Shown here: piece by piece, positions 50,473 to 52,305 of the stretch | Numbering within the stretch: the stretch's first letter is position 1 | How the letters are laid out: each line of letters opens with the position of its first letter | Assembly: GCA_033442325.1 (NCBI GenBank) | Contig: JAWQFM010000006.1 | Coordinates: 604,673-668,672, forward strand | Length of the DNA stretch: 64,000 nt | Direction of reading: 5' to 3' | Source: Salpingoeca rosetta | Taxonomy: Eukaryota; Protista; Choanoflagellata | Translations under genes and position numbers: made by a program | Notes under the pieces: model-generated | Told to the model about the DNA's origin: nothing | Databases searched by the model: none | The model's input: only the letters and a program-made list of their open reading frames with translations

Positions 50473-52305
50473 AATGGGGCTGCGGCCGTGGTGGAGAGCG
50501 GTCAGATTACAAGAGATGGGTAATCATGGAACAGTGGCGGTGGTCATGATGGCATGAACGGCGGCTGGCGGCTGGCAGGATGGCGCGGACGGCAAAACCC
50601 AATGGACGCACCCACCAAGCCCTCCCTACCCCCAGCCTCAACTGCAGGGCCAAGCCCACCACTTCTCCGAAACAACAGAGAATATTGTGGCCGTGCAAAC
50701 ACACGTGTGCACGCACACACCAATCACGCACCTCCAACCCACAGCGGGAACACCACCACCACCACAACTGTCCCAATCCACAACAACACCCCGCGCCCTT
50801 TCAACCAACTGTCCAACTCAACCTAAATACCCACCACCACCCCAAACTTCCCAGCCCTTCCAACCCACACCATCCTCGAGCTGCAACCCTCACCTCTCTC
50901 GCCCTCACAACCACTGCACACCATCACCCACCCGATCCTCCAAACACCCACATCCCCTGCTCCCCATTCCCACTCCCGCCAGACACGAAGCACGACCAAA
51001 GCTTGAAACGCACAGCAACGATGCGTGACAGCGCACCAGCCAAACACATGCTCGCCCCCCACCCCACAACCCAAGGATGGGCAATAGCTGGGCGCCCATA
51101 ACACATGCGAGCATGACACCAACGCGAGCGCCGTGCACATGGGCGTGCACAAAACAACGAAGGACAAATGGAAACCGACAAAGGTGTTGGAAAGAGGGCA
51201 CAGACTGTGGAAATGTGACGCCCTGGCCTTTGCCAGTACCCCAGCACGGGCAAACACCAAACCACCACGACCGACACCACCAGCAGAGGGTAGCGATGGC
51301 GGGTGGGAGGTGTTTGTGTGCACTGAGATGCACGCTGGGGAAGGCCATGAACAGGGCGCTGGCACAGACAACAACAGCAGCGTGCCAATGTGTTTGACTG
51401 CCTTTACAACGCGCGAGTGGTCAGACAGGAATCGCCCGCAGAGAACGCAATCAAGTGACATGAAGAGATGGAGACTCGACTGCAACAAACGCAAACACAA
51501 CACCAGCAGTGCAACACACACATGTGTGTGCACGGCGGCTCAGAGCAGGTGATGCACATGCTCGCAAGAACGCAGCAACCACCACACACATCCCCTATAA
51601 ACGGAAGCAAAGGGCGAGCGTGTGCCCAACAGTGGTGGGTGGCGGTGCAAGGCCGTGCCAGCAACGTGCGGTGGAAGAAGGGAGGGGTCAGACGCAGAGG
51701 AAGCGACGAAGAAGCGAGGGAGAGACAGCAAAGGAAAGCAGGGAACGGGACCGAGACAGGCGGGGTGCAACGCAATGTATGCGAAGCACACCTCAATGGG
51801 GGTTGAAGACCACGGGATGTGGGGCTCTCACACCAACCAGCACAATGCAGCACCGGTGGGAGAGGCGAGAAGAAGCAGGGAAGCCGAGCGTGAATGGCAG
51901 AGAAGGGAGGCTGTTCGTGCCAGGCCGTGCAAGAAAGCACAGCAAAGCACGCAGCGAGGACAGATGAAAGAAAGAAAGGGGGGGACAAATGTGTTGGGAC
52001 GAGAACAGAAGTTGCATCATGAAGATGCTGATGGCGGTGATGCCCAACAGCGGACGTGAAGCGCTGATGTGCACATGCACACGTGGCGCGACTGAACGGG
52101 CGAGAAAACCAAAAGCCCTGACAGGAGAAGCGACAAGAGAGATAGAGAGAGCAACGGAAGGAAGGTGCACTGGCTGCCATCTATACGCACGCACACATAC
52201 ACTGCAGCTGATCGCCAGCCGCAACCACAGACCACCGCCAATGATGGTCATTCTCGCCTTGGTGTCATCACCCCGCAATCTCCACCACAGCCAGTGGCAG
52301 CCGCG

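Follow-up and report, generated by a model that had tools for sequence, protein, structure and literature searches.

The 64,000-nucleotide stretch of the Salpingoeca rosetta genome analyzed here (GenBank assembly GCA_033442325.1, contig JAWQFM010000006.1, positions 604,673 to 668,672; hereafter the window, whose numbering is used throughout) carries on its minus strand a homologue of WDR36/UTP21. This is a ribosome-biogenesis gene, and such genes often host intronic guide RNAs. One of its introns contains a candidate guide RNA of about 1.8 kb that folds back on itself as a long rod, with a box C/D motif at the base, an H/ACA-like domain at the tip and three credible guide elements directed at loop 1 of the U5 small nuclear RNA (snRNA). 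Loop 1 holds the exons during splicing; its cluster of modified nucleotides is conserved, and the guides that place the modifications are known mainly from animals. The features are listed in Table 1, and positions given in descending order are read along the minus strand.

The Host Intron and Its Transcript

The boundaries of the intron are given by stranded RNA sequencing (RNA-seq): in two runs, 5 and 12 reads carry the joint 50243->52431 (cut +2), which reads CT..AC on the plus strand. Minus-strand open reading frames (ORFs) on both sides of it have Pfam matches to the WDR36/Utp21 propellers and the Utp21 domain; an orthologue search with a 144-aa WD40 fragment returned generic multi-WD40 proteins only. 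The exon-exon joint is about as frequent as the neighboring ones in the same two runs (12 versus 11-18 reads and 5 versus 1-2 reads), and splicing is therefore normal. At the same time, RNA depth over 50449-52219 is close to that of the exons, with neighboring introns near zero. Together with the normal joint, this exon-level depth is more in line with a stable RNA excised from the intron than with plain retention of the intron. Within the proposed RNA the depth is uneven, from 0.4 to 16, the low stretch being the G-rich low-complexity part of the 3' arm, and no internal joints or read-end pile-ups were found by RNA-seq within 50488-52288.

Several further observations concern the surroundings of this transcript. 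Microsatellites directly flank the proposed RNA at 50380-50470 and 52300-52365; on the minus strand these are (CAA)n upstream and (CA)n, (CCA)n and (CAG)n downstream. At 50748-50765 and 52696-52713, up to 41 RNA reads align by about 18 nt only and then continue into unrelated sequence, and the depth on the opposite strand in these bins is due to such partial matches. The probable source of these reads is an abundant transcript encoded elsewhere, with a CCA-rich word in common. Finally, at an exon end of WDR36/UTP21 (50199/50200), RNA reads and contigs have 40 letters between 49937 and 50200, of which about 32 are missing from the reference and would shift the reading frame. This gap is a strain difference or an assembly deletion.

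The U5 Genes

A whole-genome search for U5 with Rfam models gave no match, and its controls were silent too. The U5 genes were located by a pattern search for the invariant loop CGCCUUUUACU, which has ten matches in the genome. Two near-identical genes, L001 on contig C1 and L007 on contig C11, both at locus coordinates 1466-1616 and with three differences between them, align over the full length of the Rfam U5 model at 33.4 and 32.8 bits, below the 40-bit cut-off. Each has the invariant loop 1, a closing stem, an Sm site and a 3' hairpin. The loop region of both reads AGUCCCU-CGCCUUUUACU-AGAGACU, with the flanks CCU/AGAGAC, and the core reads CCUCGCCUUUUACUAGAGAC.

Much of this core had been anticipated. 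A preliminary description of the locus, made from the letters of the window, merged the targets implied by four elements into one U5 loop with a self-consistent closing stem and proposed that an Rfam search would reveal the genomic stem. The family search stayed silent, but the loop pattern led to the two U5 genes, whose stem is mostly as predicted: of the 19 core letters, 18 are right (UCUCGCCUUUUACUAGAGA predicted, CCUCGCCUUUUACUAGAGA in the genome), position 33 being C, not U. The stem pair said to differ from human is present as the C34-G48 change, while the outer stem letters, put in brackets in the prediction (GUUC and AC), are wrong, C33/A49 being a mismatch. All four implied target strings do occur as complements on the minus strand within 50506-52260: AAGGCGAGA at 52260-52252 is the complement of UCUCGCCUU, UCUCUUGUAA at 50516-50507 that of UUAC.AGAGA, GUUCUCU at 51446-51440 that of AGAGAAC, GUAAAG at 51407-51402 that of CUUUAC, and AAAGGC at 51231-51226, with a second copy at 51405-51400, that of GCCUUU. 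To the string UUUUAC, GUAAAG fits only with one G.U pair. The view that elements up to 1.7 kb apart belong to one structural unit is supported as well, all of them lying within one predicted hairpin of one intron; the 1.8-kb rod-like hairpin with C/D boxes at its base had not been seen.

The Box C/D Motif and Its Two Predicted Guides

At the base of the hairpin, a C box of the RUGAUGA type and a CUGA D box are joined by a terminal stem in kink-turn (k-turn) register. The stem consists of 10+4 Watson-Crick base pairs around a UU bulge. No other of the 524 C-D pairs in the window has a better one, and of the 25,960 pairs of an all-against-all null, 2 reached at least 13 bp. A single unpaired G before the C box gives the 3-nt k-turn bulge GGU ahead of the C-box GA, and the 3' strand of the stem (50501-50488) starts directly after the D box. 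By our estimate, the chance of both boxes falling in k-turn register at one internal loop is of the order of 3e-6 per loop, or about 3e-4 when all 88 loops of the rod are counted.

Both antisense elements follow the fifth-nucleotide rule. The fifth nucleotide of the D' guide (C52256) pairs with G37 of U5 within eight contiguous Watson-Crick bp, and the duplex (-14.1 kcal/mol) was equaled by none of 500 shuffles. The D guide has its fifth nucleotide (G50510) paired with C45. It forms nine Watson-Crick bp, four between positions 2-5 and U42-C45 and five between positions 7-11 and A47-A51, around a U.U mismatch at U46, and its duplex energy is -8.5 kcal/mol (10 of 500 shuffles as good). The register is thus right for G37 and C45, both of which are methylated in human U5 (PMC7960923), and the duplexes, at 8 bp and 9 bp, are short for antisense elements of 10-21 nt. 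In simulation, a random guide gave a guide-quality match at a human-type 2'-O-methyl site of U5 with a frequency of about 7e-5 per guide type, and no NUGA site of the window other than these two, out of 1,917, matches U5 positions 37, 41 or 45.

The two guides also pair with each other across the hairpin (GCGAGA/UCUUGU). Any two guides that are complementary to one another will imply a target whose flanks are complementary as well, and the closing stem is therefore not independent evidence. The self-consistency claimed for the reconstructed stem is partly forced; 18 of the 19 letters do agree with the genome.

The H/ACA-Like Domain

The central part of the RNA contains, in order, hairpin A, the sequence ACACAU, a small hairpin, hairpin B and an ACA at 51216-51214, that is, three hairpins, not two. 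In hairpin A (51454-51394) the two pocket strands, GUUCUCU (51446-51440) and UGUAAAG (51408-51402), are 7 nt each. An ACA at 51393-51391, also readable as part of the H-like ACACAU, lies 15 nt from the upper stem, inside the 14-16 nt expected between the pocket and an H or ACA box. On genomic U5 the pocket forms 6 bp (one of them G.U) 5' of U46 and 4 bp 3' of A47, the bipartite arrangement of a pseudouridylation guide. Hairpin A folds at -22.6 kcal/mol (z = -2.4) and also forms when 253 nt or the whole 1.8 kb are folded. No other hairpin of the window makes a canonical pocket match of 9 bp or more with any U of U5, and the frequency of a match to a random U site is 4.5e-5. A strict H/ACA scan missed hairpin A for a G.G mismatch in the upper stem, and the window statistics come from a relaxed scan.

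Hairpin B is stable (-80.4 kcal/mol, z = -5.5), and its AAAGGC element (51231-51226), proposed earlier as a guide for pseudouridine (Psi) 43, starts 15 nt from the ACA. The upper stem, however, is 22 nt away from this ACA, and with no pairing between the 5' pocket strand and U5 the Psi43 element amounts to a single 6-nt arm. Its role as a Psi43 guide seems doubtful. Of the four loop-1 modifications once ascribed to this one RNA, the guides for Gm37, Cm45 (2'-O-methylated G37 and C45) and Psi46 are in canonical register, whereas Psi43 is left with this weak arm.

The Rod

When 1,803 nt are folded, 52288-51534 pairs collinearly with 51132-50488 in 450 long-range bp forming 89 helices, so that the C and D boxes, 1,766 nt apart, stand opposite each other at the base. 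The minimum free energy (MFE) is -842.6 kcal/mol, compared with -652.6 for the antisense strand and -684 to -715 for 25-nt block shuffles; for 26 control pieces of 1.8 kb taken from elsewhere in the window, the values range from -523 to -776 kcal/mol, with no more than 276 long-range pairs. The 400-nt tip retains hairpins A and B. The rod has 89 G.U pairs (about 20%) against 2 A.C single mismatches, with 88 loops or bulges, and because a fifth of its pairs are G.U, only the sense RNA folds this well. The G.U pairs are dispersed; of 94 runs, 84 consist of one pair only, and the maximum is four. An 81-nt piece of the 5' end and a 91-nt piece with the H/ACA hairpin had no other match in the genome, giving no sign of a repeated element. 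The center of the RNA is free of strain single-nucleotide polymorphisms (SNPs) over 711 nt, which is only marginal (P ~0.03).

The 5' arm has repeated motifs, CUUGCAC and CUGGCACG(G), at 51916-51933 and 51630-51661 on the minus strand, which are complementary to U5 nucleotides 93-110, one copy being collinear (7+8 bp). This match could be accessory pairing or chance, as by our estimate about four 8-mers are expected against the whole of U5.

Table 1. Features of the proposed guide RNA, its host intron and the second locus
Feature	Position	Strand	Remarks
Host intron, WDR36/UTP21 homologue	50246..52432	-	GT..AG, 2,187 nt; RNA-seq joint
Proposed mature RNA, about 1.8 kb	50488..52288	-	rod-like hairpin; C/D motif at base, H/ACA-like domain at tip
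Terminal stem, 5' strand	52273..52288	-	GUGGUGGAGA, UU bulge, GCGG; pairs with 50501-50488
C box	52265..52271	-	GUGAUGA; sole perfect RUGAUGA in the intron
D' guide (predicted)	52252..52264	-	CACCAAGGCGAGA, 13 nt; positions 2-9 pair with U5 C34-U41
D' box (putative)	52248..52251	-	AUGA
Rod, 5' arm	51534..52245	-	C+U-rich; collinear pairing with 51132-50523
H/ACA-type hairpin A	51391..51454	-	lower stem UUGAUUGC/GCAGUCAA, 8 bp; upper stem 7 bp
Long hairpin B with ACA (51216-51214)	51214..51359	-	-80.4 kcal/mol, z = -5.5
Rod, 3' arm	50523..51132	-	G+U-rich; pairs with 5' arm
C' box (putative)	50521..50527	-	AUGAUUA
D guide (predicted)	50506..50520	-	CCCAUCUCUUGUAAU, 15 nt; ends at D box
D box	50502..50505	-	CUGA; 3' strand of terminal stem directly after
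L018, rod-shaped box C/D RNA, 311 nt	L018:1231-1541; contig C1 ~2795324-2795634	-	candidate Um41 guide

A Second Locus with a Candidate Guide for U41

In the preliminary description no guide for Um41 (2'-O-methylated U41) was found, and for the 1.8-kb RNA this is correct. However, a genome search for a guide of this type (GUAAAAGG, two free nucleotides, UGA), which gave seven matches, points to a separate C/D RNA on contig C1, L018, as its carrier. Here the C box GUGAUGG lies 5 nt upstream of the guide, and the D' guide GUAAAAGGU, followed by AUGA, forms 8 Watson-Crick bp and one G.U pair with U5, placing U41 at the fifth position. The D box CUGA is 275 nt downstream, and the terminal stem has 12 pairs. 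The fold is again a single rod, at -130.1; the antisense strand reaches -95.7 and shuffles -107.6 +/- 5.7. For the D guide of L018, a genome search for its predicted target followed by an Rfam scan of the matches gave no snRNA. Microsatellites flank L018 on both sides, as they do the proposed RNA of the WDR36/UTP21 intron. Both loci combine short guides with a rod-shaped linker, which looks like a local style.

Other Targets, Families and Observations in the Genome

Elsewhere in the genome, perfect targets for the two C/D guides are about as frequent as chance predicts and lie in single-copy DNA. The 18S ribosomal RNA (rRNA) was located by a primer-site pattern. The only match of the D guide in the screened rRNA that is better than U5 (10 pairs, contig C9) falls in an insertion of about 1.3 kb, of which a 271-nt piece had no Rfam match to the small-subunit (SSU) model; its 15-mer is missing from the copy on contig C3, and it was rejected as a target. 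The contig C9 18S locus (L014:5563-8834) is 3,272 nt long against a 1,831-nt model, with about 1.27 kb of extra sequence of lower GC content between the conserved '926' and '1391' motifs. In the sequence screened, no better target than U5 loop 1 was found for the three credible guides, all of which point to a spliceosomal snRNA, as expected of a small Cajal body-specific RNA (scaRNA). A weak Rfam hint of snoU89 (13.7 bits, E = 0.4) at 52144-52275, not at hairpin A, was not reproduced on a narrower stretch and was discarded.

Elsewhere in the window, a long single ORF on the plus strand (14771-19840), identical to PTSG_00915, has a SecA-type domain (PF07517). It has a 67%-identical paralogue in the same genome, and the domain is unusual for a nuclear eukaryotic gene.

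Discussion

The most likely explanation of these data, in our opinion, is that the WDR36/UTP21 intron encodes a hugely expanded compound guide RNA of the U85/SCARNA10 type, with C/D and H/ACA-type parts, for U5 loop 1. The 5' and 3' ends of this RNA would form a canonical C/D k-turn, with a 14-bp terminal stem and GUGAUGA opposite CUGA. Two 2'-O-methylations would be directed by the C/D part, that of G37 by the element following the C box and that of C45 by the one preceding the D box; the central H/ACA-type hairpin would direct pseudouridylation of U46. The 1.7-kb stretch between D' and C' would fold as a rod of about 450 bp, making the whole RNA a hairpin of about 1.8 kb, which may be released from the spliced intron and shielded by a C/D particle at its base. 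Judging from the registers of the elements, a C/D guide function for U5 is very probable, and hairpin A is a reasonably good candidate for the Psi46 guide. That all of this belongs to one continuous 1.8-kb molecule is rather probable too. The wider picture, in which the rod RNA is a three-in-one guide for Gm37, Cm45 and Psi46, a compound U5 guide is older than animals, a C/D particle caps a rod of about 450 bp and L018 reflects a lineage-wide design, we regard as evenly poised.

The agreement with U5 is real and far beyond chance, and its earlier interpretation was right for three of the four guides; the expectation that chance agreement was unlikely is upheld by the frequencies now computed (about 7e-5 per C/D guide and 4.5e-5 for the H/ACA pocket). 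The case stands even after the closing stem is discounted, because the boxes are in exact register at one loop of the rod, because the parts of the guides that face the loop proper match (GCCUU and UUAC), because matches as rare as those of the C/D guides were found at only two of the 1,917 NUGA sites, because the pocket match has so low a frequency at a random U, and because hairpin A is the sole hairpin of the window with at least 9 canonical bp to U5.

A number of observations weigh against this reconstruction. In the C/D part, the D' and C' boxes each have one mismatch to their consensus (CUGA and UGAUGA), and the MFE fold pairs the C' box with AUCAU at 52245-52241, with a spacing that is not that of a canonical k-turn. 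The two guides are short, one pairing over 8 bp and the other over 9 bp that are interrupted by a U.U mismatch adjoining the target nucleotide, and their partial mutual complementarity inflates the joint fit to a stem-loop target. The terminal stem is merely the base of a long inverted repeat and as such is not independent evidence for a C/D particle. In the H/ACA part a canonical H box is lacking, as ACACAU fails at the last position of ANANNA, and none of the seven occurrences of the Cajal body (CAB) box UGAG in the RNA lies in the apical loops of hairpins A or B. The rod has no consecutive G.U/U.G wobble stem, its longest wobble run being 4, and its G.U excess may be compositional, as two neighboring introns are also A-poor on the sense strand. 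Of the strain SNPs, five keep a pair, three break one and four are unpaired, which gives no sign of structural selection. The outer stem ends span 1,801 nt against the usual 60-330 nt or so of C/D RNAs, and we know of no modification guide RNA of 1.8 kb. Rfam gave no match to any scaRNA family at the gathering threshold, or at E <= 10 for U85/SCARNA10, and the rRNA target screen left out most of the large-subunit rRNA. Both ends of the RNA adjoin microsatellites and show no read-end pile-ups, so that they cannot be mapped from the reads, and assembled contigs of RNA-seq run X4 extend from the exons into the intron flanks, which indicates some unspliced RNA.

Part of this evidence would suit a structured intron or long inverted repeat with no guide function, be it a 'zipper' that bridges the splice sites, an intronic RNA that is merely stable or the decayed remnant of a palindromic duplication; the boxes and the U5 matches would then be coincidences singled out in hindsight. 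The terminal stem is only the base of the 450-bp rod, the C', D' and H boxes are imperfect, the SNPs give no sign of structural selection, and coincidences are not scarce: the window has about 0.55 8-mers per 1.8 kb that are complementary to the U5 loop region, 28 of its NUGA sites have a guide-quality match to some U5 position, and H/ACA-like hairpins are common in this microsatellite-rich DNA. Nevertheless, coincidence would have to place both boxes in exact k-turn register at one internal loop, aim both guides at human-type methylated nucleotides of the same 11-nt loop, aim the central hairpin independently at the neighboring U46 in canonical pocket geometry, and repeat the design with a U41 guide at the unrelated locus L018. 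We consider it unlikely that the intron has no guide function. A hairpin that serves as a precursor of small interfering RNAs, that is, a Dicer-processed hairpin RNA (hpRNA) locus, is highly improbable. In its favor, the sense transcript would form a long and almost continuous duplex of about 450 bp, but the duplex is broken by its 88 loops and bulges and 20% of its pairs are G.U, the two pieces compared with the genome (81 nt and 91 nt) revealed no target, and the boxes and U5 registers would be left unexplained.

Real guides might also work in smaller molecules. In this case an H/ACA-like domain of about 245 nt (51454-51211) would be released, or the rod would be cut to a two-piece or trimmed C/D particle, and the coverage of the intron would come from a precursor or a retained intron. 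The central domain indeed folds alone (-111.6 kcal/mol, z = -4.9), and the uneven depth, the unspliced RNA in run X4 and the lack of any known RNA of this class near 1.8 kb would all be accommodated. On the other hand, the lowest depth coincides with low-complexity sequence, the RNA-seq gave no trace of cuts in the form of internal joints or piled-up read ends, and a C/D particle needs joined ends, which in this RNA are joined through the rod only. Processing to smaller functional molecules thus appears improbable.

If the 1.8-kb rod is indeed a compound guide RNA, the U85-like arrangement would be older than animals, as choanoflagellates are their closest living relatives, and the U5 of S. 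rosetta would be predicted to carry the animal-type Gm37, Um41, Cm45 and Psi46. It would also supply a candidate guide type for Gm37, which has no listed guide in a human review table (PMC7960923), and a 1.8-kb hairpin would widen the range of loads that a box C/D particle can carry. S. rosetta is genetically tractable, which makes the model testable throughout.

Comparison with Known Guide RNAs

In human, the compound C/D-H/ACA RNA U85/SCARNA10 is responsible for both Cm45 and Psi46, Um41 is guided by U87/U88 and Psi43 by ACA57 (PMC7960923; PMC5733568), while no guide is given for Gm37 in the review table (PMC7960923). The Drosophila set comprises U85, mgU5-38, mgU5-42 and pugU5-44 (PMC3884663).

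The S. rosetta RNA resembles U85/SCARNA10 of human, Xenopus and Drosophila in that a C/D motif is built from the two ends, an H/ACA-type domain lies between D' and C', and the RNA is encoded in an intron. It is also predicted to address the same adjacent targets, C45 for methylation and U46 for pseudouridylation (PMC5733568; PMC7960923). It differs from U85 in its length of about 1.8 kb, the 450-bp rod linker, the extra D' guide for G37 and the host gene WDR36/UTP21, as well as in the imperfect H box and the missing CAB box, and no sequence or covariance-model similarity between the two was detected. U85 itself is about 330 nt long. By prediction from its sequence, the S. rosetta RNA would work like U85, and we do not class it as an orthologue. 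U89/SCARNA12 is also an H/ACA guide for Psi46 of U5 (PMC5733568), but it is a stand-alone H/ACA scaRNA.

For the other two sites the counterparts are Drosophila mgU5-38 and U87/U88 (SCARNA5/6)/mgU5-42, C/D guides for the G37- and U41-equivalents (PMC3884663; PMC7960923). The D' guide of the rod RNA and L018 predict the same sites as mgU5-38 and U87/U88/mgU5-42, respectively. In animals these guides are separate small RNAs, whereas the predicted G37 guide of S. rosetta shares a molecule with those for C45 and Psi46.

Two further groups of RNAs recall the rod itself. Small nucleolar long noncoding RNAs (sno-lncRNAs) are kilobase intron-derived RNAs stabilized by small nucleolar ribonucleoprotein (snoRNP) ends, with one complete small nucleolar RNA (snoRNA) at each end. 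The S. rosetta RNA is similar to them in its kilobase size and intron origin, but differs in that a single C/D motif is built jointly by both ends. Vertebrate C/D scaRNAs with a wobble-stem apical hairpin, as described in PMC6412121 citing Marnef et al. 2014, share with it a long D'-C' hairpin and abundant G.U pairs. In the vertebrate RNAs, according to the same account, the signal is a consecutive wobble run from UG repeats, whereas in the S. rosetta rod the G.U pairs are dispersed and the hairpin is orders of magnitude longer.

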